This document shows, piece after piece, positions 23,355-64,000 of a DNA stretch of 64,000 bases; position 1 is the first letter of the stretch; each line of letters begins with the position of its first letter. This DNA comes from Orbicella franksi. Its lineage: Eukaryota. Location: assembly GCA_964199315.1 (NCBI GenBank), contig OZ116709.1:5704001-5768000 (forward strand), written 5' to 3'. The notes beneath the pieces are model-generated. The model was not told the origin of the DNA. It did not search any database and saw only the letters and a list, made by a program, of their open reading frames with translations. The position numbers and the translations under genes are program-made.

Positions 23355-26300
23355 TAGCAATAACAAATTTTGAGATTGTCAAAATAGTATTTTAAGAACT
23401 TCTTTTGAGCCAAAAAATAGTGTTTTCCGTAAGCTTTAAAAACTGTAGGCAACATTAAGAAGGAAGCTATTGAAGTGCACGTAATTGTCGTGCCAATAGT
23501 GTAGGTATCCAATTACAGATATCCAGTTACAAACAGTTGTAATTGGATACCTATAATTGGACACCCATGTGATTGCGCACCGATTACGTGACAAATGAGC
23601 TCGCGGAGAACCGATCACGTTCGAGAATTTTTTATAAATGCGACTATACAAAATATAGCTTACATGGTAATATCTGTTGCAGTTGTTATACCACAATCCT
23701 TACTCGTGTACGCATTAGACGGTTTGAGACGTGGAAGAGACATCAGCCGAACTAAGGCCCCATCAGCTTCTCTCATGGGTGTGGGTACTGCCCAAGGCCC
23801 AGATGGTCGCCGGGACGGATCTTTACGGTTCTATGGGCGACGAAACAGCTACGTTGAAATTCCTAACACTGGAAAATTGGACGTTAGATACTCAATAACC
23901 ATCCTTATTTGGGTGTTCCATGAAGGCGTATCAGGGCCTATCTTTAATTACAATCCACGAGGCTTCGGCGTCCACTTATGGATGACAGGTCGGCGCCAAC
24001 TTTTCGCGCGCTTTGTGACACGGTCGCGGCGTTTTACGAGGCCGATTACAAGTGGACGTATGAAATACAAGGCTTGGAACTATGTGGGTGCAACCTACGA
24101 CCGAAGGACTCGCATTGCCACCCTGTACATTAACTCGATACCAGTTGCATATAGAAGAATCGGCCGCATACAGTTATCCACCAACTATCCCGTGAGGCTT
24201 GGCGCTCGGATTGGCGACAGGCGTTACTTCCATGGAAGACTCTTTTGTGCGCAGGTCTACAGCCGTGCGCTTAAGAAGAAACAGATTTTCCGGGCCAAGA
24301 GGAGGTGCTTTCTACCAGGTTTGCGTTTGCTGTGTTCTGTTTATAATTGCAGTAAACTATACCCGATTAGGGAAAGAGGGCTTAAGTAGTTTCGTTTTCC
24401 TTAATTTATCTCCTTCGCAGCCTTTATTTAACCCTCACGTTACGTGACGAAGGTAACGCTCCTCTCCACTAAGTAGAGAACAAGGAAACCGTTGTGTGGC
24501 GACCCAAGTAACGGCTATGAAGAATTCAACTCCGCCCCATTCGCCTTTATAACAACAACAAAAGACTTTTGTACTTACTTTGTACTAAGATCAAAAACTG
24601 GAAAAAAAGAAAGAAAAAAGGAAAATAACCATTTTTTCACTGCATGAGAATTATACTACGTGACGAAGAAAGGTGATTTCAAGAATTATACTGAGACTAG
24701 TATGTTTGAATTTACCATCTGACCTCGGTTTCTAGGAGGCTGGATGACACAATCCACCGAGTAAATCTCTATCCAGCGGATAAGTGTTCACAAAACAAAC
24801 CATGGATAGTGATTTATCCAGTGGATAGCGTTACCCACCTTTCGAACTACCGGGCCCTGGGGCCCGTTTCTAGAAAGCCCCGGAAACTTTTCGGGACCGG
24901 AACGAACCTTACGATTACAAAGCTGTTTTGTTCACGTATTCTTAATATGAACAGAGGCTCCCTTCATAGAAGAAGTTTCAGGCGTATACACTTCTCCGTT
25001 TGTAGACACAGATGAACTACAAATGGTTCTACGGGCCCGAAAGGTTTCCGGGGCTTTCGAGAAACGGGCCCCTGGACTACTATATACATTTGGACTTCAA
25101 GCAACTTGTTAAGTTTAGCAAACACCTAAGCCGAGGTAAGGGTTGTCATATATGATTTTCTTTTGCAGTTCCACCTCCTACTGTTCCTCCCAAACCTAGT
25201 CCAACACCAGCCCCACGTGGTAAGGCTGACTTTGTATTTATCTTAGTGAGAGTAATTTATTAACATCATTCGGTCGAAAGCCAAAAAGTAGCGTGTTACA
25301 AAAGATCGTTAGGAAAGACTAAGAACAACAACTAATTATTCCTAGTACGAGGCATTCAGTTGCTGTAAAGCACAGGCCATGCTAAACGAAACTGACGGAT
25401 TTTGATAAGACTTTGTTTTTCTGACTGCCCTACCGTTGGTGTCTACATCATTTTATGCAACTTCTCACGAATGTTAAAGAGCTAAAAAGTATATTCACTG
25501 TGAAAGCCGTAACCTTACTTTCTTTCCCATAAAATGTTTAGTTTGTAGGCAGCGAATCGATCTTGGCTTCCTCGTTGACGCATCCCGCAGCAGATACGGT
25601 TCCCGCGCGATCCTGCGATTCATCAAGGACACAATCAGGCGTTTTGAAGTATCCGTCTCCAAAACGAGAATCGGCATCGTACAGTTCACCTCTAGAGTCA
25701 GGCTGATCTTGCGCTTTGGGAGAACTTACAATCCAGTACGAACTGGCAGACTAATAGACCAGATCCAATTGAACGGTCACGGGGGTAGATACCTAGGAAA
25801 AGCTCTGAGTTACACAGAGCGGTATCTGTTTAGAAGCAGACCTCGTTGCGGACGCAGAAGGGTCCTCATTGTTTTGACAACAGGAGAGTCGCGCGATGCC
25901 GTAAAAATGCCGGCAGGACGCTTGTTTTCATCCGGTGTTGAAATTTATGCGATTGGTCTGGGTACGGTGAGGAGGAAATCACTGCAGCGTATTGCTACTG
26001 TGTGTAAACAGGTGTTTAGAGTCCATACAAGACAACTGGTGTCACTTAGTAGAATAATCCAAGACAAGATTTGCAGTTCAACAGGTTAGCGAGTTTAACG
26101 TTGTTATCATGATAGATCTTGGTAAACTCTTAGTGTAAATCCTTAATATGCACTCCCATTCATACGATTACCTATACTAATACCAGTGCAAGAGGCATAC
26201 TTATTTGGGATTCTTCTCATTGTATAGTAATCGTATCAAGTGGAGCTGTGGCTCTTTACCCATTCACGAGTGCCTCAAGCGGACGTGACGCTAGCAAGTA

Positions 26301-29300
26301 CAGGAACCCGACGGCAAAGATAAAGGGGCTCTCATTCATTCAAGGCCCGGACGGACATCCACAGGGAGCTTACTATTTCCCAGGGCTACGAAGAACAAGA
26401 GGGAGAAGAAGAAGAGGAAGCTATGCTTTGATTCCAAACGACGGGTGTCTAGACACACGGTACTCTATAACGATCATTGCCTGGATCTACCCGGAGAAAC
26501 CTGGACCCATAGTACACTACAATCCCAAGGGATGGGGCCTCCATTTGTGGCTGACCCATCCCAACGAACTCTACTTCCGGTTGATGCCGAGGCGAGGCTC
26601 GCGTCGTAATGTGAAACCGCTGACAACCCGAAGCCTAAAGCGGTACACTTGGAACTACATCACTGCTACTTACGACCATCGCACAGGTCTTGCAACTCTT
26701 TGGATCAATGGGAACCCTGTATCTCAAAGGAATGTCGGAAAATTCACTCTGGGGCTCGCTACTAACTATCCTGTCGTTGTGGGTCAGAGGCCTGGGGACC
26801 GTCGCGTGTTTCGTGGGCGTATTGCGTGTTTGCAGATATATAACAGGGCCTTAACGCGAGCACAGATTGTTGCCAGGCAGAGGCAGTGCTTCAGAACAGG
26901 TACGTAAAAGATACTGAAGAGGTTGTCTGCTCCTTTTAAAATTAGCAACGAAGGAATAGGAGATGAGACTTTAAACGAGATTTTAACGAGATTCAAGCAT
27001 AATAACTCTACTTGACCTCCCCACAGTGATATTCTTCCAACAGAGAATATCTATATCTACACTGGGAGCTTCAAATAACAGCTTTTATTAAAAGTTAATT
27101 TGTTTGTCGGTCAAATTTCTTTCGTCAGTATTCGCCGCCAGACTCTCTAATCTATGAACTGAAGTGGCAGTTGTAGTGAAACTCACGTTATAACCAAACA
27201 AACTTAATCACATTAGCTAACCTAATGTTGCCACTGCAACGATTTTTCAAAGATAGTGCAGAAGCTATCCCGATTAGACGGCCTGGTGACCAGCTAGAAG
27301 ACAACACACTGTAAAAGTCCCTTATTGATTTGGATCGAAGGCTAATATTGATTAAAGTGTCTTATTAACACAGAGAAGTCAGCCAAATGTGTTTGGTTGG
27401 GTTTATGTTTTGAAAATGGCTATTTATAGGTTTTTGTTTAATACTGACGTGCAAGTATAGTAGATATACTGCATAGTTAAGTCTATTACATGGACTTAGA
27501 TTTCTGTACCAAATTGAGAGTTACAATTTTGGACAGGATTTACAATGCTATGAAAGATTTTCCGGAGGGCCCATGATGGCAGAATGGGATGGAAAGGTGA
27601 TCGTTTAGCTATAAGGCAGCTTAACCTAATCTTATTTCCTCCGTCTATTTTCAGTACCTACGCCAAGACCAACGCAAAAGCCAACTACCGCTCGACCAGG
27701 TTTGTCATTAGTGGATCAAAGAGTCTTTCTTCCTTATTTCACAACGTGGTTGACTACTTTGGCCGCTATTATATTATAAAATATCTATTATAAAATATGC
27801 TCAGGTGAAAATTACCGCAGGTCCTGGTTATACCAAACACTCTAATTAAACGTCATTTCCTTAATTACTTGCAATAGTCTATTTTACAGTTGTGTGCTCA
27901 GTTACCTGACCCATGAAGCAAGCGAGGCTGGAGGTGACCTTGCTTTGATACAAACCTCTCTGCTTTTCTCATCTGAATGCAAACTAGTTAGCGTAAGAAT
28001 AATTTGATTTACACTTCGAAAGCAATGAGGTGTGTATCAAAACAAGGTCACCTCGATATAGCCTCGCTGCTATTCAAAGGCTGGGTCATTGAGCAGACAA
28101 CTGTAAAATGGTCTCTCTTTAGTTTGTGTTATGTCCGTCCCTCACTAACTTATATTTTCATTTATTTTTCTGTCTTTCTCTTTAGTTTGTGCGATATCCG
28201 TAGATCTGGGATTTCTCATTGATGGCTCGTCCAGTATCGAGCGTTATGGCAGAGGAAACTTTGCGCGCCTGCTCAACTTCGTCAAGTCTCTCGTGAGTTT
28301 CTTTCCAATATCTCGCCAAGAAACACATGTCGGTGTCGTCCTGTACACGCGCCGGTCTATACCCATCTTCAACTTCAACCGGTACTATACTAGAGCCCTC
28401 ATCTTGAGAGCTATTGACAACTTGAGGTATCCTCGCGGTGGTACCTACATCGGCAAGGCACTGTCATTTGCCCGACGCTATCTTTACAGAGGAAGACCTG
28501 CATCTGGTAGGAAACGGGTGCTTGTTGTGCTCACTGATGGCGTTTCCCAGGACAGTGTAAGCTCGCCGGCGCGCCGTCTCCGAGCTTCAGGCTGCGAGAT
28601 CTTCGTGTTAGGAATTGGACGAGGATACAGGAAATCACAGCTGAGGCAGATAGCCACTGATAACAGTCATGTGTTTACGGTCTCCTTCCGATCCCTTGGA
28701 AAAGTGATACAAAATATTAAAACCAAAGCCTGCCAGAAGCCTCTGCCTACGCCAAGTAAGGGTCCGATATTGCATTCATTTTCCCTCTAAGCAACGTTAG
28801 CTAATTTATCGTAGGAAGGTCTTTTTTGTGAACATCTTTCTGACTCTGTTATATAGAACGCGTTTTTTATTACATCGGCATATCAATACTAATCACATTG
28901 TCTTATGTGATTCGCTCAAATATTTAAGCAGTTTTTGTCACTGTTGTGTTACTTGCGTAACACGTACAACCTTACATTCAGTTTCTCAGCGTGTGGCCAT
29001 ACCACATCCCCTTCCTCTCAGACCAGCTTGATTTTCGTTTAGACGCAAGAAATGGGACGACATTAAAGAGTAAAAACTAATGAAAACATGTGTTGTGCGG
29101 GGGGTATCGCACTTTACCTAGTCTGGTGTTTATCAAACATTTTTCCTGTCTTTGTTTTTTCAGTACCAACAACACCAAGGGGTAAGTTTATCTCTTAGTA
29201 AAATACGTGGCAAGTTATGTTTTGACAGTGCAACTGTAAAAGTTTAGTTGATATCCTTTTGATGTCAATGGCTCTATTTGTATGTCTCAAGTTATGAAAG

Positions 29301-32300
29301 TCGACTTACCTGCCAGTTAGCTATTTTCTTTTAAACCTTTTTAAATGTACGGATTGAATCATTAACGTTTTGTTTGCTTGTTGTTCTTTTTTCATTCAGT
29401 GCGTCTACCAAGTACCCTGGCTGTCTATCCCTTTGATCGTCGGAGACAAGGACGAGACATCAGTCGGAGTAGAAACCCGAGCGCACGAATTGTAGGCGTG
29501 AAATACGGACAGGGCCCTGATGGCCGTACAGACGGCTCCACCGTATTCTTCGGAAGACGCACCAGCTACGTTGAAATTTCTAACACTGGAAGACTGGACG
29601 CGAGGTATTCAATTACTATCTTGATCTGGGTGTACCACGATGGGAATCGGGGTCCGATTGTCAATTATAATCCGAATGGATTTGGTGTTCATCTGTGGAT
29701 GACGGGCAGGCGGCAATTATTCGTTCGCTTTATGCACCGCAATGGGCGAAGGACTCCGCCTTTACGGAGCAACCGGTTTAAATACCGTGCTTGGAATTAC
29801 GTCGGTGCCACTTATGACGAGCGATCTGGTGTCGCGACGCTGTGGGTAAACTCGCATCCGGTAGCGAGGCGTAGACTAGGGAGAGTACGTCTCTCCACCA
29901 ACTATCCTATTCGACTTGGTGCTATCAGAAGAAGTCGAAGCTATTTCCGGGGAAAGCTCTTCTGTTTGCAGCTTTATAGCGTACCCTTGACCAAGAAACA
30001 GATCTTTGAGGCAAAGAAAAAGTGCTTCCTGCCAGGTAAGTTTGCGAGATTCTTCATTCAGTACAACCGAGCTAAGTCCGTAGTTAGTTGTACAAAAGAC
30101 CACGACTGGAGAGCGTTAATTTTGCATGCCGTTGTGAAGTTCATCGTTCGGCGTGATCCTTCAAGCTGTAAATCCTCCTTTTTGCTTAGTTTATTAAAAT
30201 TTGGGCTTTCCTATGAGTATTAGCGATAGCCCACAAACGATTAAAGTACTTCAACTATTTAGCTAGGGCCTTGGTTTTGCACATCGAAAACTTTAGAGAA
30301 AAGCCATCGAGCATCATATGTACTTGTCCCGTTCTAACCAAATCACTGGTCGGTCTGAACAAAAATGTACATATGGCAACGAATAACTTATCAGTGATAA
30401 TGTATATGAAATATCATACGCAAAAATTCCCATTATATCACACCTTTTTGTTTTTATTTCAAGTACCTACACCAACGAGACCGCCTATCCGTACCGTACC
30501 GTCCACTCCGCCTCCAAGAAGTAAGTGTAAATCAGTTGTTGCAGTTCATTCCTCGTTTATGTTGCCAGCACCACTGAACCGTCTGTGTTAGTAAGGTAGC
30601 TGCTTTAGATGGAGCCAGAGTAGCCCAGCTGAAAGTCCGAAATGTTGCAATATGTGTGTTTGTGTCGGTCTGTCGGTCTGTCTATCTGTCTGTCTGTCTG
30701 CCTGCCTGCCTTCTACAAGTGGAACCTTGATTTAACGAAGTCGCTAGGGATCGGCCAAATTTGTTCGTTAAATCGAGTGTTCGTTATATCGAAAACCTCG
30801 ATATAACGAATTTGAGGGAAACGACCAAAATGTTCGTTATATCGAAGTCGTAGTTAATCCTTGATTTGCAACACAGGTGACTTCTGTCACGCAATTCAAT
30901 GCAATTTTCGTCACCCAGAAGTGCCGCGTTTTGAGATGCAATTCATTAAGCGTGGGGGCTTTCAGTATCAATTATTTTCACTTTTGAGGAGATGCGCAGC
31001 TTTTGTTTACAAAGAACGACACTTTCAGAGCAGCGATTTAAAAATGTTGCGACATAGAGGTTATACAGAAAATTGTCTATGTAAACAAGGAAACGGGCTT
31101 TATGTTGCACTACCCAACATTTCCGGAATTCAAAGAAGATAGAGCAAAAGGTATGGGTCGCACTTGGGAAATCTTTGCGAGAATTTGTTTACTTTGCGGT
31201 GGAAATCTCTCATCGCGGGCCTTTGCCTAGTGCGACCTTAAGTTTTCCGCTTTGGCAAAAACTTTGCGAAGCGGCAAAACAACAAAGACGCCGTAGTGCT
31301 TGGGAATCACAGCGGTTACTGTCAACGCTTGTCAGCGTAACATGAAAAACGATACGGGCGGGAAGTTCAGTTCTAGAGGGTTGCCTTACTAGACGGTGTC
31401 CCAGGATGTTAAAATGCCGTTGAATGAATTTCTTGTAACTCGAAGCTGCTGACGAAAAAAATCTTCCGGTATTGTTACGTCATAGTAGTGAAGATCAAAC
31501 CACGACTCTACCAATATGGTGATCGAGCTATTCTTCGTCGACGTCGATTTCTTCCTTTGATCATGGCCGCTGTTGAAACCGTCAAACATTCGTCTGCCCA
31601 TCGTTCATACATCAAGTGAAAGACAACAAACTGCTGTAGGTTAAGCTGAACAAACAGAAGGAGAACCACCGCAATAGCTATGAGCACTCCTTTAATCAAC
31701 CTCCCCTTGCTTCTCTTAAAATAAGGACAACAACAACTTTGTGTGGCTGAAAATGGGGAAGTGGGTGACAGAGTGCTCAGTTAATATTTTAGCCCCATGA
31801 ACCCCTGGAGTGTCAAAAAAACAAAACCTACAGCCCAAGGAGATGTAGACAGTGGATGGAGAGAAGGAAGTAAGCCTTCACTCAGGGCCACTGTAAACAT
31901 TCCTGGGTAGAGAGGAGGGAGTGGGCCTCCTCTCTGACTGGAGGGAGTGGGCCTCCACTAACCTAACTCGAGGGAGTAAAATTGGAGGGAGTTTGCCTCC
32001 GAAAATCGAGTCTATGGGGGCAAGAGTGTGACGAGAGGAGCACTTCATCCCCATTCCCGTGTTTATTTGACCAACCTTAACAGAACTTGCAAAGAACGGT
32101 AACAATATAAAAAAGTATAAATTGTGAATTATGATCTCAAGTATGTATTACTGGACTGGCAGACTGTTCTAATCGACATAAGCAAACCTAAGCGAGGTAC
32201 TTAGTTTCTATAGTTCGTTCAGATAAGTAACATACTTAAGTGTCTCTGAGAATCGTGAAGATCCTTCAATAGATTGACATGTCTAAACCACCTCAAATGT

Positions 32301-35300
32301 GGTATGTAATTGCTCTAAAAGTTATAAATGTTCGTTTTGGTAATTTTAATTTAAGTGTACACAAAGAAACCTCAAAAGAGGTACTTATTCTAAGAGTCCC
32401 ACTGCTTATCTTAACAATTAACGCATCTATTAAATACTACTAAAAGTGGTGCTTGAACCCTCAAGATTTACATGTTATGCCAGGAGTTTTTATTAATCGT
32501 GTACATTACAACTTAGGTGTCAAACTGATGTCGCCCTACAATTTAAGTTGTATTACAAAATATCCTAGATGATTGGAAAAGCCCTTAGGCAAACTATATT
32601 ACTACGGAGACCTATGAGGGGGCAAGTGCTTTGGGTGGGTGGGAGGGAATAGAAAATATTCTGGACAAAATGTCGCACTGTAGTCTATTTCGTGTGAGAG
32701 CAAAAGACACTGGCGAAATTTAGCAAGCACGTATCAAGATGCTAAAGTTCACTCTGATTGGCTGGTTTTCAGGATTCTCACGTGAGGCCATCCAAGGTCG
32801 ATGAACGGATGATTAGCAAAGCACATAGCTCAAAATAGAAACAAGAGTTGTTGATTAACTGAAATTTATTTCATATGGTCAATAAATTGTGATTCAATGG
32901 GAAGCATGCTTGTTTCGGTTTAGATCGCGATCAATATCAGTCTTTCGAAAGCACGTAGGTAAAGAACGTGGTATCTAGTATCTGGTTCCTGAAAATTATC
33001 TCCCACTAGTGCGACCCTCCGTTTTCTGTCTAAAAGTTTTCCTTTCCGGTTGCGGTTTCTAATTTTTGTGGTTTTTTAGCCGGCAAAGATGAAAACTTTT
33101 CCCAAGTGCGACCCATACCTTTAATTGATGTCGAAATACTATAGTGCCAATGTCTATGACATATAATAAGCCGTTGACTGAAAGGTTGCTGTCTCTTTAC
33201 CATAAGGATTACAAGGATTTGTTGACTGTTGATGTGTTCAGCGTTTATCTTCTGTCGCAAGTTGACATTGTAATTCGTTATGTCGAGGTAGATTTTGCGT
33301 TTGGGCTTCCGGATTATGTTCGTTATATCGAAGAATTCGTTATATCGAGGTTCTATTCCATACAATTTACTGTAACTTTGGCCGGGACATTTAATATCGT
33401 TCGTTATATCGAGGACTTCGTTAAATAGAGGTTCGTTAAATCGAGGTTCCACTGTAGTAGCTGCTATATATATGTCTCTTTTTCTGTTGTTCTGTCTCTC
33501 TATCGAGACTGTCTGTCTGCTGCTCGGTTCGTTGATTGGTCAGCCAGTCAGTGGCTCGGTCAGTAGGTCGGTCATTCTGCTGTATGTGCATGTCTGTCTG
33601 CCATTGTGCAGCCAGACACATATATTGTGGTAGATTTTTTTATTAATCTCACTTAACCACCAGTTTGCAGAGCCCGCATCGACCTTGGCTTCCTTATCGA
33701 TGGATCTCGCCGAACCGGCACCGCCACTTTTCAACGCATTATCGAATACGTGAAAGAAACAGTCAGACGATTTAACGTCCAGGGTTCTCAAACAAGAATA
33801 GGTCTGACTCTATTCGCTTCCAGGCAACGACCGATCTTCGGTTTCCGTCGATCTCACAGTCGCGCGCAGGTCTACCAAGAGTTGAAGAGATTGAGACTTC
33901 TACGGGGAGGAACGAGGAGGACAGCTAGAGCCCTGATGTTTGTCAAGAGGTTCCTCTTTCGAGGTAAACCCACGTGTGGTCGTAGGAGAGTCCTCGTCCT
34001 AGTTACTACTGGTGTATCGCGTGATGACGTCGTGCGTCCAGCGAGGATCTTGCACGCCGCGGGAGTCGAAGTTTACACGGTAGGAGTTGGTCGTGTTAGT
34101 GTGAGGTATCTGAGGAAGATAGCTACAGATCGGTTCCACGTGTTCTCTGCCAATGTCGGTAGCTTGCTGACTATAGTCAGGACACTCAAGGACAAGATGT
34201 GCCATTCTCCAGGTAAGTCCGCTCAGAGCTTACTTTCAAATTCTCTTTACCTCCTCCGGTAATATGTTTATTATTCCCCGGAGAATTTAGGGCGCCATCA
34301 ACATGTTTGTAGCGCCAAATTGGAATGCAGGTTTGTCATCAATTATTGCCTCTCGAATTTTGATTTTGCCTCTCGTATTTTTATCCAACTTTGGACAGTG
34401 TCAAATTGTAACTTAGATAATTCTTAGAAAATGTTATATCTCTGTAGCAGCTTGGTACGGGTCTTGTTTCCCTGCTAGAGATAATTACTCGAATTTCAAA
34501 TACGATGGTATGGGAAAGGGCATTGTGGCTTACTGGGGTTCGCTGTTGCAGCCACGAGAAACAACGCTACTCTGATGAGAATTCTAATGCAATTTCAAAG
34601 AAAACAAGGCATTCATAATTCTGTTGTTTCGCGCACTTGAATTATCTACAATGTATCAGCGAATCAGGGCTAATGATGCTACCCGTTTTGACGGAATTGC
34701 GGATTCACACTAAACCCACTAATATTATAGTCCTCTGAAAGACTGAACCTAAAGTTGCTCGATCGACAGCAGTGAGCGTTTCATGTAAGTTCAATATTTT
34801 ATTTTTATTCTAGTGATCATATCCAGAGGAGCTGTGGCCACCTACCCCTTCACAAGTGCAGTAAGAGGCGGAGACATCAGTCAATATAAGAACCCTCCGG
34901 CGCGACTTGTAGGGGTATCGTACATCCAAGGACCCGACGGACACCCGCAGGGGGCTTATTACTTCCCAGGGAGGACCCGAATAAGAGGAAGGACGAGAGT
35001 AAGCTATGCCATCATTCCTAACAATGGCTGCCTTGACACACGTTACTCGTTGACGATGATATTCTGGGTGTTCCCCGAATCTCCGGGACCTTTAATCCAT
35101 TTCAACCCGAAGGGATGGGGGGTTCATTTATGGATAACTCGTCTGAATCAGCTCTACTTCCGGTTGATGCCCAGGAGAAGGACCGGCCGCCGGGTGAAGC
35201 CGCTGATTGGCCGCGGGCTTAAACCGAGGACTTGGAACTACGTCGCGGCGACTTATAACCACCGAACAGGTTTGGCGACCTTGTGGTGTAATGGCTACCC

Positions 35301-38300
35301 AATAGCGCAGCGAAATGTTGGTAGGTTCCCAAGTGGACTGGCGACCAATTATCCCATCATTATTGGTCGGAGACCGGGTTCTCGTCGCGTGTTTCGTGGA
35401 CGACTCGCGTGCCTGCAGCTGTTCAACGTGGCGCTAACGCGGCCTCAGATTCTCGCTCTGCAGAAGAAATGCTTTCGTCCAAGTATGTATTGACCAATCA
35501 ATAACAGATTTGAGTTGCCCTTGCCCTTGTCTGGTTTACATTTTTGCTGTTACTTCGTTTAATATTGATATTCCTGAACATTTTTTTTCTTTTTAGTTCC
35601 AACTCCCGCGCCAACTCCAAAACCAGGTACCTTACTTATACTGTTCAATATTTTATTTTTTTAGTTAATAATTCCGGCCTTTTTCGGATGGTAGGGAGTT
35701 TGTAGCGTGATTGTAGAAGTCTTGACAAAGTCTTTCAGTAGAAATTTCAGGTCATATCTTAACCTGTCTTCCAGTCTCATGTGAATCGATAATAAAAGGA
35801 CAACATAACGCGCGAAGATATTTTACGTGGAGACTCCGTGAAGCGCTTACCACATCGTCGGAAACGCACGTGTGGTTGTCCTAACTCTTTATATTTGTTA
35901 CCGTTAGTTTGCAGATCTCGTGTGGATCTTGTTATCCTTATTGATGGCTCTAGAAGTGTTGGACGAAGTAACTTCCGAAAAGTCATCGACTTCGTGAAGT
36001 CTTTTGTTAGTTTCTTCCCGCTCTCTGCACGAGAAACACGTGTAGGTGTGATGGTGTTCTCTTCTCGGTCTCGACTCGAATTTGGTTTGAACAGATATGG
36101 CTCACGAACTCAAGTTGTGAGAGCGATTAACCGCATCAGGTTTGTACAACAGAACAGTTAAGGTTCATAGAGTGCTAGTACAGTCCATGAACTCTCCCTT
36201 CGCCTCTCTATATAAGGTGAAACCAGACGCCTAGGTTCAGCCCATAGAGGGGTTTTCATTTGAGTGTGGAAAAGTAATTGGGTTTGTACTTACTATGTCA
36301 CACGATTGGCTTAAAAACTCGCAGCAAATTTTCATCAATTCAGGAGTAAAACTGAAACCAATCGTGACTCGTTCGCACACGTTTTTCCGCGCTTCTTGTC
36401 ATCTACATATACATGTAATTACTTCGAAACTTGATTGATACCGTCTGTGTCCTTGTGATTGGCTAGACGGATTACTTTGGTTTTTTGTTTTGGGACACTT
36501 AATTGAAAACCGCTATAGTGTCATGTGTGGGGAAGGGAGAGGTCAGGGACAAGACTAACAGACTGCTTGAACTATTTTTACTCTGTTCTCGTGCATTTTG
36601 TAGTTTCCCTTGTGCGAAGAAAACCTTCAACTATTTGCTTAAAACGACACTACTGTCAAAATGATCGAGCATTTGGTACAGTATTCTTTGCGACAAATTG
36701 AAGCAAGTTATCTAGTTATTATTTTGACAATGAGTTGATGTAAATGTCAAGATGCTGTATCGCATATTCAAGGAAAAGAAGTCTGTAGACAAAATCGTAT
36801 ATTTGAAAAGAATAGCTGTGTATGTCAAGCGCCTCCTTTCACAGCTGTGGTAACATAAGATATTTATAAACCGACTAATGTAAAAATTTCCAGATACAGA
36901 CCACTTCGACGAGGCACTTACATTGGAAGAGCGTTAAGAAATGCTAGAAGGAGTCTGTTCCGTCGCCGGGTATTGCGTGGACGAAAACGCACCTTGCTCA
37001 TCATAACGGACGGCAAGTCATCCGATGGTGTTTCAGGAGCGGCATCAAGCCTGAAAAAAGACGGTGTTGAGCTGTTTGCTTTGGGTATCGGCTCTCGTTA
37101 CAGCAGGAGTCAGCTGATCAGGATTGCATCAAGCCCTCTCAATGTATTCACCGCTGGTTTTAGTCGGCTTGGTACAGTTGTTCGCGCTGTTAAAGAGAAA
37201 GTATGCCGACCTACACCTACACGTAAGTTTTTCTGAGCGTTCTGAATGTTTGGTCGCGAGGTACAGTACATGCACTGAATGACATTAGCGTTGGTCTATG
37301 TTAAAGTTTGCCATTACGATTAACGTCATGATGGTCTCTAGTCAAGCATTATAAAAACGTGTGTTACTACCATGTATGTGTTACTAATGATATTCTTGAA
37401 TTGGACAGTTCAATAATCACTCTTGTTAGGCCTAAAATGACTTTAATTTCGTTACATTAGAAAACAGAAAAAGCTACATAAAAGACGTATGAAGAGATAT
37501 CTGACAGCTGCGTCTCATTTTGCTCTCCTTCTATCGATTTGAGACCAAGGGAGAAACGATTATTCGTTGACCTCGCAAATAAGTGAGCCGATCCAGGTTT
37601 GAAGGGTACCTTTCCCAATACCTTGCCACTTTTACTTCGAGCTTCAACATACTTAGAGGATTTGGTTATTTAGACCCAGCTCAATCGCTTATAACTGACA
37701 CGAGTTGATTTTCTTTTACAGCTACTGTTCCAACACCAACAAGTAAGTTCATTTTGGTGAATTGCAGCAGTATTCTTAAAAAAAACAAATTTCGAGGGCT
37801 CGAGAAATTGGGGTTCAACTGTTTATGCCCTTATGCTTCCTATCGATAGTCTGGTTTCTAGTTAGGTAATCCTGGAGAGGGTTGGGGAGAGGGTACTTCT
37901 CACATTTCGACTGTACAAGTTTGATGTGTCTGGACTTCGATGTCTAACTGGATTGGTGTACTCAGTTGCACAATTTCAGTGTCACATTGATGTCTAGTGA
38001 TCAGCTGATGTAGATAAAAAGGAAACAATGTTGTTGAAATGGTTTGCTATGGTTTCAGGTTATTTCCAAACATCCACATTTGAATTTGCCTGAATTCTGG
38101 GTTTTTTCATCGTGACACAAAGCTGTATGTTAATGGCTTAATCTATTTTACGCAGGACCACCACGTGCTGTTGCATTGTACCCACTCAACAGCAGGACAC
38201 AGGGACGTGACATTGGTCCAAGAAAGAACAAACCCGGTCGTCCTAGCCAGGTGAGTCTGGCTCCTGGACCTGACCGATTTCCCCGAGGTTCCTTCTACTT

Positions 38301-53800: not shown

Positions 53801-56800
53801 GAAAAGTAATCTTTAGTGATGTATGATGGGCGAATTTGTAATGCCCATATTTTGGGTATTTGCAAAACAGTTGCCTATTTGGCGAAGTGCTAAATTAACT
53901 CTTTCACGTTAAGCGTCGAAGTCATCACCCTTGTTCCCTATTTGCGTTTAAGGACGGTGCCTACTTTTGTTGGTGCGCACGAGTTCTGCGCATCACACAA
54001 GCCATGGTTTAGCTCCACGCGCGCGCTGGGGGTGACATTGACGCAATCAACTACGCTATCACGTACACGACAAAATGAAAGCAAAATTTTCCTACTGTGA
54101 CCAAATCAAGTTTAATGAACCTGCACTTAAACCAGGAACATCAGAATAGCAGTATATCACTAACCACTAACTGTTTACATCTTCCAACTGAAAACCTAAC
54201 TGTTATCTGTCGAAAATTATACTGAAAACCAACTGTAAACATGTACCTGCAGATGGCGTGGTGCGCGCGCAAGACAAGTGCGAGATACGCAAATGTCTTA
54301 CTTACTGGGGAGGTGACAGGAAAAAATGTAACCGGCATCGTAAACGTTTTCAAAAAAGATCAATAACTTTAAAAAACGCGTGGTTACCCCCTATATTTTA
54401 TGTTATGAAATGGAAGTGGCAAATCTATTCAACGCGTGATTAGTTTCTGGTTGTGAGCAAAAGGTATTTAGACTGTATTTTAGCTGAACCAGAGGAAGGC
54501 TGTCAGATACGCTGAAAGCGCTTTTGCAACAATTTTGTCATTAAAAACATATCAAAAATGTTTTTTATAACCATTTGCCATGTAGTTTAAAGATCTTTTT
54601 AAATGAGTTTGCTTTTCTGTATGTAAAGGCGAATTCTATGGAAATCTGTGAAGAAATATCCTTTCCTTCTTTTTTCAGGAAAATGCTGATGTCAGCATTT
54701 TTGTTGAGATTCAAGGCTAATTATCTCGAAAAAATGCGTGGCTACCCCCATTTTTCTTTGTAGATTCCAACAGCCCTTGCAAAGATCTACTTTTTCCGCG
54801 TGGTCCTAACCTGGCGTAAAAACCTTTCAATTAGTAGGCACCGCCCTTAAGGGGAAAAAATCCTAAGTAACCGTGCGTCTCTAAGCTAAGGTTCCAGTTG
54901 TCCCATATCCGACTTACGCTAATCCAGTTTTCGAAGTCAAGCCACAGAATTTAGTTCGTTTACCTAAAAAGTGTTTGTCAGTTTTTTTCGCTGTAAGTTA
55001 CAATTTAAGATAAGCCAAACCGTAATATGAAGGACGAAACTTATGGAACAGATTTGTTATGATACTCTCATATGATGGTAACCCTGTGTTAGCCTTATAC
55101 GCCATTTGAAACACTGGTTCCAGCGATTGGTACACGCCTTTAAAATGACAGCAAGTTACCCCTGTAAATGACTAAGGGGATGTCTGCATTGCTAGCTGCT
55201 TAAAAAGTACTTTCAAAATCTAGCGAGGTAGAGAAAATTAAGGTCTTAAAGTAAAACTTTTAGTACAATTCAGACCACGATACGTACTTATCTCTCTCCA
55301 GGTACTTATTTGGCCGAGGCAAGAGAACAGGAAGAAAACCAGTTCTTGTTATCATAACGGACGGCATTTCGCAAGACAATGTCCTCATCCCTGTCAACAG
55401 TTTGAAACAGAAGGGAGTGGAAATTTTTTCCTTGGGGATTGGTAAAAAGTTTAGAAGACTGCAACTGCAACAAATGGCGTCCAGTCCATCGCACGTGTTC
55501 ACGGCCGGTTTCAGGAGACTGAGTAGTGTACTTGCCGCCATTAAGAACAAGGCGTGTCTACCTTTCGTTCCACGTAAGTAATTTTTTCTAAGTTCTTCTC
55601 CACTGAGTTCAGCTCTCGAGTACTCGCGAACGACGTGATCCACAGTGTTAGGTAGCGTTCTAATTCGGTAGTTTTCCAGAAAAATTTCAGTAAGATAGGG
55701 TTAGCTCGTAATTTTCCGTTATAATCCGAAATCAAAATAATGTTAAGTAATGTAATGTAAGAAAGTAAAGTAATGCAAAGTGAACTTTTGAACCATTGAT
55801 AGCTATACAGGGTTATTTTTCATAAGCTTCAACAATGCATATTTAGCTTGAGATCGTAACATCCACTCGCATATCACGTGATCCACAAAGCCAGTAACAG
55901 TCCCATGAAACGATTTTGGATATCACTGTCCTTCCAGATCGTAGATTAGTTTTATTTCATTTTAAATTGGTTTTGTTTTTACTTTTTACTTCCAGCGACA
56001 AAGCGACCTACACCACCAGGTAAGCTATGCAAAGTCGACACTTGTTAATCTAGCCAACACAGGGGAAACCGAGTGTTCACATCACAGAAGTAGTTCATAC
56101 CAGTTACTGCTGGTTGGTGTCTAGACGACATGTTTAACTGCATGTCTGTCATTCTCTGTTCTAGCAATCATGCTATTCTTCAACAGCTGTGTATTAATAA
56201 GGTTCTGGATCCCATGGCACGATCATTTAAAAAGATAACGTTGCAATAAAACTTCAGCCATTCTCCTGTACTTTCTTTCTGTTGAGAGAAAGAGCGTTTT
56301 GAACTAAATCGTTCTTTAGATTATTATATATTGCCATATATATAATAATTCTCCTGTACTTTCTTTCTGTTGAGAGAAAGAGCGTTTTGAACTAAATCGT
56401 TCTTTAGATTATTATATATTGCCATCCCAACTGAGGCCTATCTCCCTGTAGAACGGTTTAAATTTGTATCTTAATTTATTCCATAGAATTGCGCAACGAT
56501 TTGTGTCATGTTTGCCTACGTAGATGCATACCCTGTTATGTTTTCTTTTTCAAATCTCACTTTGTATCCTTGTTTCTAATTCAGCTTGCAGCCTAGCCAT
56601 TGATATTGGTTTTCTCCTGGACGCCTCTGGGAGACGCGGTCTATACAACTTCAGGCGAATCAAAGAGTTTGTCGCACTCATTTCCCGCTCATTCTCGATC
56701 TCTCGAAGCCGAGCTCGTGTGGGAGTCATCGTGTACGGATCCACCGTTCGGATGGAATTCGGACTCAATTCGTACACTAATTCACGCAGCCTCAATCGTG

Positions 56801-59800
56801 CTATCAAGAGATTACGTTATACGCGAGGGTCAAGAAAAACTGGAAAAGCCTTGCGGCTTGTAGTTGGAGAGCTGTTTAGACGCAGCCGAAAAAAGCGGGT
56901 GTTGATAGTGGTAACAAATGGTCAATCCTACGACAGCGTTAAAATACCAAGCTTTCAGATACACCAAGCCGGAATTGAAGCCTTTGCAGTTGGTGTTGGA
57001 ACTCGAGTTAGGAACAGCGAGCTGAGTACAATAGCCACAGACTCTCGCCACATATACATGGTGAACTTCAAGACGCTTAATGGCATCGTCAAGAGCATTG
57101 TCAGGAAAGCTTGCAGAGGTATTTAACACTACCTGACTGTTTATTGTTGCCACATTTTTTATTAACACAGTATATCCCTTGCGGAACAGGAAATTACGAC
57201 TTGTACTGCAGGGGAGCCAGCAAAATATACTATTCGACAGTTTCTGAAAATTACCTTTTAATTTAACGAGTCTATTCATCGTTTTCGGAGTTTTGAATTT
57301 CTAAAGACAGGGGTGGAGCTTCTTTTTTTTATTTTGGTTTCTCGCAGGACTAAGAGTAGTAGTACTTAATAGTTTTGCTCGCTGTAATTCGTCAGGGATA
57401 TAAGCTAATTGCAAACTGGCATCTTTCTTTCAGCACAAATTACGACACGGCCAACAGTTCGACCAACCAAGCCGTCTCCAACCAGAAAACCAAGTAAGTT
57501 TGTTATGGAAATACTGTAATCATGTAGTTATGTTGTTCGAGAACAGTAGACAATTGTTTGCAGTTTTCTTAAGTTTCTGGCCGTTAGCGCAGTTTCCGCG
57601 GTGGCCTCATGGTTAGAGCGCTCCGGATCACTGAAGCGGTCACTGCTAAGTGCTCAAGGGGACGCTGCCTTGTGTTCTTGGGTAGGACACCTAACTCTCC
57701 CAGTGCCTCTCTCCAGGTGTATAGATGGGTACCGGCGAATTTAATGTTGTGGTTACCTTGCGATGGACTAGCATACGATCTATGGGGGAGTAGAAATACT
57801 CCTAGTCGGTCATGCTACAGAAACCGGGATAAACTCCAGTCTGATGGGTCACTTGGCTCGTATGCAGACTTTAACTTTTACCGCTATTTATTGTGAACTT
57901 AGTCTTTTTGTTTTTTGTTTTTTTTCTGTCAGGTTTTCCTACGCCCATCGCCATCTACACACTCGATCGCAAGACTCGCGCACGCGACATAAGCCCAGCG
58001 AAAAACCTTCCAGGTCGAAGCTACAACATCCGGTACGCTCCTGGTCCTTATGGACAGCCTGGCGAATCAACAGAATTCTTTGGTCGCCGTAACAGCTACA
58101 TCCGGTTTCCAAATAACGGCAGACTGGACGCTAAGGACTCTATAACTCTTCTAGCCTGGATTCTACCGTTTGGTCGCGGTCCAATCTTCGAGTACTTTCG
58201 GGGAGTAAGGTTTTGGGTTGTGCGCTCGGACACGTTATACGTTCACTTCATCCGCCGGAACGGGCGGCGCACGAGGGTGTTGATGAAACGACGCCTCAGA
58301 CCACGCCGTTGGAATTACGTCGGTGCCACGTACGACAAACGAACTGGTATGGCTACCCTGTGGCTGGATTCAAGGCCGATATTGTCGCAGAATATCAAAC
58401 GAATTCAATTGGCGACCAAAAAGACTGCTTACATGGGTGGAACATTCCGAGGTCGCATCGCTTGTATGCAGGTTTATTCTGACCCTCTGACTGGACCTCA
58501 GATTAAGAAGGTCAAGAACCTTTGTAATAAACCAGGTAAGTCATATAAGTCTTGAAGTGGAATCCGTAAAATTCTCATGTAGGCTTGTAGCATGCGGTTG
58601 CAATAGATAAATTTCCAGCGAATAATATTTGTTTTTGCATGCGGATTATTACTTAAGGGATTAGACGAGTGACTCTTATGGGGTAAATATTTTCTTCTCT
58701 CACCCACTCTCCCCAGCCCCCATAGGCGAAGCCCCAGCTTACCCTCCAAGAAAGTAATTTATCTAAAACCTTTCGTTCTTCTACATTGATTTCAAACTTG
58801 ATAAAGGGATTCTACTATTTTGTTCCCGGACTTCAGAAGAGATTACGCTCTCACTCTGTCAAGCAGTAAATATATACATCAGTTGCAATACTTTTTTTAA
58901 TCTTTTTTTTTATGGTTTTTCTGAATTTTAAATCTACTGATCCTATTTAAATTACTTACAGGTCCTTACACGCCAACAACACCATCTCCTGGTAAGTGTT
59001 TGATTTGTATATATTTCAATTTGTGTTAATTACTGTAATGTTCTATAAATCATTCAATTTGTCACGGTTAAGGTGTGTCTGAATAGTGCGAAAGGATCAT
59101 TTTTTTCTCTCTTTCTGTTCCCTAGCATTGCCTCCAGCTCTGGCTTTCTATCCCTTAAACGTGCGTTACAACACCCGTGACGTCAGCAGGAGCAAAAACC
59201 CGTCAGGGCGCATGGCAAATGTGCGACCTGGCCTGGGTCCAGACGGAAGGCCTGGTGGCTCCTTTAGGTTCAAGGGTCGTGCAGACAGTTACATACAGTT
59301 CCTGAATAAAGGTCGTCTGGACGCCCGGAATTCCATCTCTATCTTGGCTTGGATAAATCCGGATGGACCAGTTGGTCCAATCTTCAATTACAAGCCTGAC
59401 GGGTTTGGCGTGCACTTGTGGATGGTCCGTCGGCGAGTGTTGCTGGTACGTTTCGTGACGCGTACACGAAAGTTTACAAAGCCAGTGCAAACGAACCTCA
59501 TTAAACCAAAGGCTTGGAATTTCGTCACCGCTACCTATGATCAACGTTCGGGAATTGCCCGATTGTACATCGATTACAGGGAAGTTGCGTGGACGAGAAT
59601 CGGCCGGATACGACTGGCTACGAACTATCCAGCAAGAATGGGAGCCCGTATTGGAGACAAGCGTTATTTCCGTGGACGAATAACTTGCCTGCAGATTTAC
59701 GACGTCCCACTTCGACCGATACAAATCAAAGCCGCCAAGAGACTCTGCTTGAAGACAAGTAAGCAAAGCAATTCTTAATTAAATTTGCATTCGTATTACA

Positions 59801-62800
59801 CAAGCATCTCAGAAAGATTTGAGGTGTGTTCCAAGAAACCTTTTTTCCTTTCTTTACTTGTTATCAGTTGATGAATCGATTCAAGAGTGATTCGTATTGA
59901 ATAATTGATCGATAGCTTGATAGATCGAATTGATTGATTTGTTTGTTTGTTGTTTATTAATGCTTTCATTGCTTGGTCCATTACTGATCGATCGATTGAT
60001 TTTTTTTTTTTGGCAAAATTTCTGCATCTAACTTAAGCTACATAGTCGTTAAAAGTTTTTACGTTATCACTATCGTGCTTTTCATTCTTTAAACAGAGGT
60101 TATAACCAAACCAACAACGCGACCGACACCTACCAAGCCCACCCCACCAAGGCGTAAGTAACCAATCAGCAATGCTCTTTCTCCATTTTTCCCGTCTCTC
60201 TATAGGCGACCAGAGGAGAAAGGAAGAAGTCGCCTTTACTAAAAATGAAGTCACCTTTACCAATTAGTGGAAAATCTGATTTTTCGTTTTCCGTGTTTTC
60301 TTTTTTCTTTTATCCCGATTCCTTCACCTCAGTTTATCCCTTAATTGACATACTTTTAGATATGTATATTCACGAATCTTAAAAGTGTGCGGTTTTAGTT
60401 AACGGTAATAAAAAAACTCCTCTGCTTTCATGCGAAAAAAGCAAAACATAAAATTTGAAAATTGGTTTGCTTTATGATGACATTTTAATTTGAGTTCTCA
60501 ATGTTTGATTATTAAAACATTCTCGTCATAGCAATCTTCTCAAGTTCAAAATGCGCTTTGCTTGAATTTATTGTTCTCTATATTTTCTTTCTGTAGCTTG
60601 CCGAGCGAATATGGATCTTGGATTCCTTATCGACAGCTCCTACAACTTGCGACGAGTAGGGCGCGGAGCTTTCAGACTTCTTACACGTTACATTGCAAGA
60701 CTTCTTTACACGCTTCGCATTTCCACTCAAGAGACCCGAGTCGGCATGGTTACGTACGCGTCAAGACCCAGGCCCCTGTTCCGCTTTAACCGGTTTTTCA
60801 GGGCGTCTTCCATGTTGTCGGCCATACGAAGAATTCGCCTTCAAAGGGGTCCTCTTAGGATAGGAAAAGCTCTGTACTACGCTCGTAGGTACCTGTTCAG
60901 AAGAAGGCGTCAATGTGGACGCAAGCGCGTTCTCGTGGTGTTTGCAAGTGCACGCTCAGTAGACAGAGTGCAAAGAGTGGGACGCGTTTTAAGGCGCATG
61001 GGAATTGAAGTGTTCGTTGTTGGCTTTGGTAGACGATTTAGCAAGGCGCAGTTATTCAAAATCGCTACAAATGGGCTGCACGTGTTCACGGCGACGCCGA
61101 GGACGTTGGCTGCAGTTCTGGGCGCCATACGAGCTAAAGCGTGTTCAGGTATCTTATGGGTTAAATTTGTGATCAATAATTCACAGTCATGTTCACACAC
61201 ACTATCCTGCTTAAGAATAGTCTTTAACCCACTTAATCGAACAGTGACAGTTTACAAGTTGATATCATTAATAACAATCTCAACGGTTCTATTTGCAACA
61301 GTTAAAAAAGCAATTACGTTTAACGGTTATAATCAGCCCTGGATCACTTTACAGATCAGCCGCCTTTTAAGCCATCGGAATATAATTCAAGTAACAACGC
61401 GTTAAATTTGATGTTTGGTTTAAATTGGCCCTCAGCCTCTTCTTAACTTACCATTGATTCATTTAAAGATCTTTGTGACCTCCTTACCTTGCTTACCACA
61501 AGCGATTCAATCGTTGTCGTTTTTATTCTGTTTAGTAACCGGATCAGCAGCCGCCAGAGCTATATTCCCATTTAACGGTGTGACAAGAGGACGAGATATA
61601 AGCATCAACCGCAACACTGCTGCAAGACTTGTCAACGTCAAGCCTGCACCAGGCCCAGACGGCCTTCCTCTTGGATCGTACTATCTCCAGGGCATCGCAA
61701 ACAGCTACATATACTTTCCCAACAAGGGCTGCCTAGATACAAAGAATTCCCTCACCATAGTGGTTTGGGTCTACCCTGAGGGCAGCGGACCGATCTTCCA
61801 CTTCTTCCCTCGCGGCTGGGGGGTACATCTTTGGATGAAGAATCCGCGCACCCTACTGGTGAAGTTCGTGCCTAGGTCCTTGCAGACCATCAGCGTTGTT
61901 ACAAGCCGGCGAATCAAACCGAAGGCCTGGAACTACATAGCGGCAACCTACGATTACGTCACTGGTTTGGCCACTCTGTGGAATGATGCCATACCTATAT
62001 CTCAGAGGAATATTGGAAAGATCCAACTGGCGACTAACTACCCAGCTATATCAGGGAAAAAGCCAAGAGATCGAAAGATTTTCCGTGGCCGGATAGCATG
62101 TCTTCAGATTTACGATCGAGCATTGAATGGGAGACAACTCGGAGCTCTGAAAAAGAAGTGTTTCAGAGGTTTGTTTTCAGAATTATCGTTAAAAGAAGTT
62201 TTCAATTTAATATCGATATCGCGCTATTGATATTGATCTTTTGAAATTTTCTTTGTTCTTCGTCAGCTCGACCCACGCCTACTCGTCCACCACCAGGTAA
62301 GACCAACTTTTCTATCTCACTTACCATATTCAATGAAAACTCTTGAGATTTGAAAGTTCGGTAAAAATGTAAATGGTAAGACAATTTTGGCTCGACCGAC
62401 CGGAAAATCTTCGAAATAAAAGGAACGTCTTGAAAGGTAGTCAAAAATTTCCAACTGAAATATCCGAGTGGAAAATGTACTTACCATTTGCAATTATTCG
62501 CCGCCCTCTTGGAATTATGATCAGGTTTAACTCGTCAGTAGTCTATCTCGGTAAATTAGGGGGTTTGGGGTAGATGGTAAGTGGCCAATCCGAATGAAAG
62601 TCACCATCAGGCATTTTTGCTTACCATTTGCACAACCGTTGACGAACCGCTTTCTTCATGTAAATGGCAAACAACCGGCATCTCTTTAGATTTTGACATC
62701 CATATTTTCAGCCTCCTTCGTCAGTGTTGACGGCATGTCCGTATTATTTTATCACCTTCTCATACATCTTTTCTCCTTTCAGCTCTTCCACTTCTAGTCG

Positions 62801-63424: not shown

Positions 63425-64000
63425 GTAAGTAGTTGTATGTGTGGCAAGTGCTTATGCGTAACGTAATATCATGGTTGAAAAATTACGCCTTATTTTTGGC
63501 GCGAACTTTCAGCGTTAATTTACAATTTTACGTGAAATACAATAAAATACAATAAGCCAGTCATAAGCCCGCAATCGTAAGCGTAATATGTCACCCACGA
63601 TATTATAAGGTAATCAAATGGTACTGACTCGAGAAATTAGGAAATGATTCCTGTTGCGTTTTGTCAAAATTCTAATTATTTCCTAATTTCACGCGCCACT
63701 ATTTGATTACTTATACTAATTCTGTAAGTGTAGTACGAGCCGAACGTCTCACTACCGTGAAAGCAATTATCCGTGTTTCACAAGAAATTAATTGTAAACG
63801 GATTAATTGTAAACGCTGTTTTGTGTAATGCGAGAAGTAGACGTTACCTTCAATTACCGTAATTGCGCTATGCATATGAAAAAACAATCGTTTACTAATA
63901 ATTTTCGAGAGGCGGCTCCTTCAGTATCTCAGAGATGAGATTCGAGTCAATACCCTTGTCTGCAGGATGGAATGATGAGGTTGCTTAGCAGAAAGACGTC

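Follow-up and report, generated by a model that had tools for sequence, protein, structure and literature searches.

In a 64,000-nucleotide stretch of the genome of the stony coral Orbicella franksi (contig OZ116709.1, positions 5,704,001 to 5,768,000; hereafter called the window), the + strand carries a single giant gene, mostly with one domain per exon, for a chain of VWA and Laminin_G_3 (LamG) domains. Five times in this window, a VWA domain with an additional loop cysteine was directly followed by a LamG domain with an additional cysteine of its own. At these five joints alone, the short exon that codes for a Pro/Thr-rich hinge at the other joints was missing. Each of the five pairs is very probably a rigid didomain without a hinge. 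The balance of the evidence also tips slightly toward a further step, in which a disulfide between the two extra cysteines staples the pair together, as a stiff unit among freely hinged beads.

Matched cysteines at joints without a hinge exon

The + strand of the window showed many open exons in succession, each of 180-230 codons, and in the usual case each VWA or LamG bead corresponded to one phase 1-1 exon. Profile hidden Markov models built from these exons retrieved at least 27 VWA and at least 32 LamG domains across ~117 kb. The mapped domains, all of them on the + strand, extended from 12336 in the window to ~52.7 kb past its 3' end. The domain alignments and counts cover the window and 70 kb downstream, with 27 VWA and 32 LamG domains (V and L followed by a number in the following); an additional, split VWA begins upstream of the 27 mapped ones. 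Both domain types were recognized by Pfam, the VWA domains (PF00092) with E values of 3e-32 (V6), 1.3e-29 (V13) and 1.2e-38 (V5), all above the gathering score, and the LamG domains (PF13385) with E values of 1.5e-14 (L8) and 6e-14 (L17).

In the alignment of all domains, all VWA domains began and ended with a Cys, and all LamG domains had two Cys near the C-terminus. A third Cys was found in VWA column 122 (xCGRR/KR) in V4, V6, V9, V10 and V13 only, and in LamG column 68 (GCLDT) in L6, L8, L12, L14 and L17 only. Each of these Cys-type VWA domains directly preceded one of the Cys-type LamG domains. An initial annotation of the window had named exactly these domains and this order; the alignments of 27 VWA and 32 LamG domains, together with a check of the codons, confirmed both lists, and the direct succession held for all five pairs. 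Its outer limits, 25542 and 62168, proved to be exact exon borders (Table 1).

Ordinary domains had two Cys and Cys-type domains typically three, with one more private Cys each in V4 and L8. Because the extra Cys comes on top of an internal pair, an even count is reached only by the VWA and the LamG together. The non-Cys VWA domains of the gene most often had Arg in the same column, and Ser, Thr, Pro or a gap also occurred. With 12 direct VWA to LamG joints in the window, the coincidence of five Cys-type VWA with five Cys-type LamG would have a probability of 1/792 for independent joints, an assumption that fails because the cassettes are related. A search of the 497-Mb genome returned these five LamG domains alone as Cys-type (370-411 bits with a Cys-LamG profile, vs. 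at most 275 bits for all others). At the paralogous VWA/LamG loci of this chromosome, neither Cys was present.

The metal ion-dependent adhesion site (MIDAS) was degenerate in the Cys-type VWA domains of the window: TTG, AAG or ASA replaced TDG, and the DxSxS motif was partly degenerate. The other VWA domains of the gene kept DGSGS...TDG. Two divergent Cys-type VWA domains from other species combined an intact TDG MIDAS with the loop Cys, and therefore the loss of the MIDAS is no precondition of the Cys cassette. Membership in the VWA family does not require a MIDAS.

The exon structure at the joints was read from splice signals and from comparison with the orthologous contig of Desmophyllum. 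Introns were unalignable between the two, apart from short blocks. These blocks held exons of 30-57 nt (phase 1-1, canonical AG/GT) encoding Pro/Thr-rich peptides, and four such microexons were conserved between the window gene and Desmophyllum. A uniform scan from V0 to L18 detected a microexon at each joint except the five Cys/Cys joints, the one between L15 and L16 (58962-58991) being visible under a relaxed filter only. Every Cys cassette was flanked by Pro/Thr microexons. Across ten sources, the microexon was lacking at 19/20 Cys/Cys joints, as compared with its presence at 84/92 other joints. A direct in-frame splice, from a phase-1 donor to a strong acceptor, was possible at 20/20 Cys/Cys joints, and the linker that results from it was 8-10 residues long in every case (e.g. 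C-[YHS]SP-V-I[IR]RRG-AVA...). The scan thus bore out the earlier observation that these five junctions alone are free of a linker microexon, and no hidden microexon came to light at any of them in the window.

Splice joints between domain exons were also sought in metatranscriptome contigs, and none were found; the sole joint seen there skips 61 nt inside an intron (57748-57810). Over window positions 56500-62300, these contigs covered introns as well as exons, and for this reason they look DNA-like. Two polyA raw-read runs contained almost no reads of the gene and gave no clear expression. The sampled adult tissue may not express the gene, or its expression may be confined to certain stages. 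One stretch of the intron between V12 and L15 (57664-58051) had a ~1,200-4,700-fold word depth in the metatranscriptome contigs, compared with 10-100 outside it. This stretch, which gave no match in an Rfam scan, is probably a high-copy repeat.

Table 1 Cys cassettes, control pair and linker microexons, in window coordinates.
Feature	Position	Strand	Remarks
V4 exon (VWA, loop Cys)	25542-26084	+	Cys codon 25847-25849; MIDAS degenerate (LTTGES); phase-1 donor CAG/GTTAGC (slash, exon border)
L6 exon (Laminin_G_3)	26228-26899	+	GCLDT Cys codon 26446-26448; 143-nt intron from V4
V6 exon (VWA, loop Cys)	33664-34212	+	Cys codon 33975-33977, residue 104 of the fold
L8 exon (Laminin_G_3)	34814-35482	+	GCLDT Cys codon 35029-35031; 601-nt intron from V6
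V9 exon (VWA, loop Cys)	45593-46135	+	Cys codon 45898-45900
L12 exon (Laminin_G_3)	46544-47179	+	GCLDT Cys codon 46735-46737; 408-nt intron from V9
V10 exon (VWA, loop Cys)	50478-51020	+	Cys codon 50783-50785; recent V9 duplicate
L14 exon (Laminin_G_3)	51426-52061	+	GCLDT Cys codon 51617-51619; 405-nt intron; recent L12 duplicate
V13 exon (VWA, loop Cys)	60597-61148	+	Cys codon 60914-60916; most divergent of the Cys-VWA clade
L17 exon (Laminin_G_3)	61536-62168	+	GCLDT Cys codon 61730-61732; 387-nt intron from V13
V2-L3 pair (natural control)	17426-19536	+	Ser in V2 and Arg in L3, both without Cys; joint microexon 18403-18444
Pro/Thr linker microexon, L7 to V6 joint	30464-30520	+	Conserved in Desmophyllum
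Cassette-flanking microexon	25169-25219	+	
Cassette-flanking microexon	27655-27699	+	
Cassette-flanking microexon	35597-35626	+	
Cassette-flanking microexon	45237-45290	+	
Cassette-flanking microexon	47283-47327	+	
Cassette-flanking microexon	50120-50173	+	
Cassette-flanking microexon	52151-52204	+	
Cassette-flanking microexon	60097-60153	+	
Cassette-flanking microexon	62267-62296	+	

Conservation and descent of the cassette

The cassette was conserved across Hexacorallia. A search with the Cys-VWA profile retrieved 100 exon-sized proteins, 86 of which were of the Cys type, and the Cys was kept in 86/86 of these clusters. Products of Nematostella vectensis, Actinia tenebrosa and Desmophyllum pertusum were among them. 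The Cys-LamG profile retrieved 120 proteins; the best 81 and seven more divergent ones with the Cys made up the type (88/88 clusters), and the remaining matches were L9-type (Gly) or L3-type (Arg). In both sets, the residues beside the Cys in the loop varied, with the Cys itself invariant.

The contigs around 12 such proteins were scanned for joints in which a VWA is directly followed by a LamG. Both Cys were present at 28 joints, neither was present at more than 30, and none was truly discordant, the sole apparent exception having a VWA interrupted by an assembly gap. The 28 joints came from the window, D. pertusum, N. vectensis, A. tenebrosa and six more assemblies, of cnidarian or coral-metagenome origin. 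All 28 joints were concordant, and not one ortholog had a single Cys of the pair. The cassette occurs in sea anemones and in stony corals, and it is therefore older than their split.

On the trees, the Cys-type VWA domains formed one clade (support 89/87 within the gene and 96/94 with the orthologs). This pattern suggests that the cassette essentially arose once and then spread by duplication. The branches of V9-L12 and V10-L14 were short (~0.03), in agreement with their earlier description as recent duplicates. The L3-type LamG domains, with Arg in place of Cys (coral, Desmophyllum and Nematostella), were the strongly supported sister of the L17-type, inside the Cys-LamG clade. An approximately unbiased (AU) test rejected the monophyly of the Cys-type LamG domains (p = 0.03, for a group chosen after the tree was seen). 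V2, the partner of L3, also had no Cys, and the V2-L3 joint had a hinge microexon. A placement of the V2-type with the Cys-type VWA domains was neither shown nor rejected (p = 0.31-0.52). These trees point to roughly two coupled events, namely a single gain of both Cys followed by their joint loss in the V2-L3 type, or else two gains. The figure of at most four independent cases in the initial annotation was too generous, since the trees give one origin and one further coupled event.

A unit of LamG, Cys-type VWA and Cys-type LamG was repeatedly amplified in tandem. Its window copies are L11-V9-L12 and L13-V10-L14 (43616-52061). The two copies in the window paired with each other on the trees, as did two copies in another species, which indicates separate duplications or gene conversion. 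One assembly was without the duplication, and another had five copies in a row.

Possible roles of the matched cysteines

V6 was predicted by AlphaFold2 with a predicted local distance difference test (pLDDT) of 95.3 and a predicted template modelling (TM) score of 0.92. The model had the alternating strand-helix order of a Rossmann-type fold. Its Cys 104 was located between a helix (86-96) and strand beta4 (107-114), three residues before the latter. L8 (pLDDT 94.1) was an all-beta jelly roll, in which Cys 72 lay in an ordered, 11-residue loop (the PNNGCLDT loop) between strands 64-67 and 79-87.

In human VWA2, the site before beta4 is partially exposed; it lies on the side opposite the MIDAS and close to the two terminal Cys, and an unpaired Cys introduced there leads to disulfide-linked aggregates (PMC5774751). 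By analogy, the Cys of the coral VWA, in its alpha3-beta4 loop, would be at the base of the domain, where the linker to the LamG starts, and would be reactive without a partner. A conserved Cys at such a site is expected to be paired, because an unpaired one drives the aggregation of VWA2.

We propose that the gene product is a chain of VWA and LamG beads linked by short Pro/Thr-rich hinges, each from its own microexon, and that the five VWA-LamG pairs form a separate, ancient module in which the VWA exon is spliced straight onto the LamG exon, with a fixed short linker. In this module, the base of the VWA would hold its Cys, on the side away from the MIDAS and adjoining the N/C-terminal clasp from which the LamG emerges. 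We infer that the two Cys loops face each other, and that the loop Cys of the VWA and that of the LamG form an intramolecular bond between the domains. Such a disulfide would staple the LamG onto the base of the VWA and create a rigid two-domain body in an otherwise freely hinged chain. A disulfide-locked rigid unit had been suggested in the initial annotation; its rigid, hinge-less part was well supported, by the missing microexons, the direct splice and the linker length, and the bond itself is consistent with the data rather than proven by them.

Several points weigh against the stapled didomain. The co-occurrence of the two Cys is explained largely by descent, with the Cys-type VWA domains forming a single clade. 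When covariation across orthologs was corrected for kinship, the paired contrasts were 2/2 concordant (sign test p = 0.5), a test without power, since two contrasts cannot reach significance. Odd Cys without a partner exist in the gene: V4, L8, L9, L18 and L29 have private ones, and 11 VWA domains further downstream carry a third Cys in helix alpha1. A two-chain complex prediction for V6 and L8 had a score of 0.13, which was taken neither for nor against binding. The exon joins were deduced from splice signals and conservation. No spliced VWA-LamG protein was found in the databases, where a length-extended V13 query returned single-exon products of at most 264 aa only, and a search of representative proteins gave no protein in which a VWA leads into a LamG.

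The same cysteines could act between molecules, as exposed handles to other chains or to distant cassettes, so that the five nodes would build a covalent network comparable to those of von Willebrand factor or mucins. Both Cys are in surface loops, and at the equivalent site of human VWA2, an unpaired Cys leads to aggregates linked by disulfides (PMC5774751). The tandem amplification of the cassette, which has led to five copies in one species and to separate duplications in each of two lineages, would multiply the nodes. However, one Cys per chain would be enough for a network, and the strict pairing in adjacent domains would be unneeded. The loss of the hinge exactly at the Cys/Cys joints and the fixed length of the linker are also left unexplained, and we regard this network as unlikely. 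A related idea, that the matched Cys are a designed cross-link or latch, in which the VWA Cys bonds the LamG Cys of another chain or the bond opens under force or redox change, appears rather improbable to us. If true, amplifiable Cys cassettes would set the number of covalent nodes in a Hexacorallia-specific, polycationic fibre network.

Co-inheritance alone would be a simpler account, with the didomain held by its short linker and an interface, and the two Cys having separate roles as free thiols or in metal or cofactor binding, or no role at all. It fits the single origin of the cassette, with only two independent contrasts, and the unpartnered Cys elsewhere in the gene. Yet both Cys have remained invariant in 86 and 88 clusters and at 28 joints, across the split of Actiniaria and Scleractinia, with neighbouring loop residues free to vary, and the V2-L3 type is without either of them. 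Extracellular domains rarely have conserved free thiols, which also counts against this account. We give it only a small chance. An inter-domain lock could also exist with a shuffled connectivity, the VWA loop Cys bonding one of its own terminal Cys and the displaced terminal Cys bonding the LamG Cys. The loop is close to the terminal Cys pair (PMC5774751), and the C-terminal VWA Cys is 8-10 residues from the start of the LamG. Nevertheless, the terminal pair was invariant in 27/27 VWA domains, with or without the loop Cys, which argues that it keeps its usual partner and makes the shuffled arrangement very unlikely.

The gene and its relation to known systems

The window covers the middle of a giant coral gene, whose product would presumably be secreted and is extremely basic. 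All 59 domains had an isoelectric point (pI) between 10.4 and 12.0, with a median of 11.7; Arg and Lys made up ~20% and Asp and Glu ~4% of the residues. Such a charge over the whole gene points to a giant polycation, which would presumably bind polyanions. In V7 (35910-37206), V11 (52981-55557) and the downstream V23-V27, the VWA was split by an extra intron, at differing positions. The split of V7 is common to Actinia and other corals. The Cys in helix alpha1 (NFxRCL) was found in V15, V16, V18-V20 and V22-V27, all past window position 64000, and the neighbouring LamG domains had no matching Cys. It may be a buried free thiol or have another partner.

The Actinia, Nematostella and Desmophyllum gene models named "Collagen alpha-1(XII) chain-like" or "hypothetical protein" are true orthologs or homologs, with the same order of VWA and LamG domains and the same cassette. 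Their names are automatic, and the catalogues cut the gene into fragments. No collagen-type Gly-X-Y run of six or more triplets was present in any frame of the 134 kb examined; an identity as a collagen XII-like protein (fibril-associated collagen with interrupted triple helices, FACIT) was rejected for lack of this helix. A role as a skeletal matrix protein was likewise rejected, because the gene is also present in sea anemones, animals without a skeleton.

A literature search yielded no description of this protein family or of a VWA inter-domain disulfide. Inter-domain disulfides are a familiar device in modular extracellular proteins. Because they are already well known, no concept is overturned here; the new details are the pairing of VWA and LamG, its strict tie to the missing hinge exon, and its age. 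The cassettes define a structural module, a hinge-less VWA and Laminin_G_3 pair with one matched Cys in each domain, kept since before the split of corals and anemones. The module is part of a giant, extremely basic bead-chain protein, which is fragmented and mislabelled in gene catalogues. The distribution of linker microexons, present at some joints and absent at others, can be read as a map of flexible and rigid joints in giant matrix proteins.

The solved folds nearest to V6 were those of collagen VI alpha3 N5 and N2, the mussel protein PTMP1 and VWF A3 (Foldseek TM scores 0.87-0.91, with 0.87 for collagen VI alpha3 N5; 22-26% identity). Collagen VI alpha3, VWF A3 and PTMP1 have in common with the coral protein a Rossmann-type VWA, a clasp of N- and C-terminal Cys and an arrangement as repeated beads in matrix proteins. 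Unlike them, the Cys-type VWA domains of the coral have no MIDAS Asp, bear an additional Cys ahead of beta4 and are joined to a LamG without a hinge, and the coral locus, in contrast to collagen VI, has no collagen helix. L8 resembled Laminin_G_3 and concanavalin A (ConA)-like jelly rolls, which are pentraxin-like, and its best PDB matches were generic ConA-like, lectin-type folds with 12-18% identity. The coral LamG domains differ from these generic jelly rolls by a pI of ~11.6, a family-specific N-terminal extension (AVAxYPL...GRDIS...NP) and, in five copies, the PNNGCLDT Cys. The closest likeness for the VWA Cys was the Arg446Cys variant of human VWA2 (AMACO), in which the Cys is also just before beta4, opposite the MIDAS and near the terminal Cys (PMC5774751), an equivalence of columns that was judged by description and not by alignment. 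Arg446Cys is a pathogenic, unpaired novelty, whereas the coral Cys is of ancient origin, does not vary and is matched by another Cys in the domain that follows.

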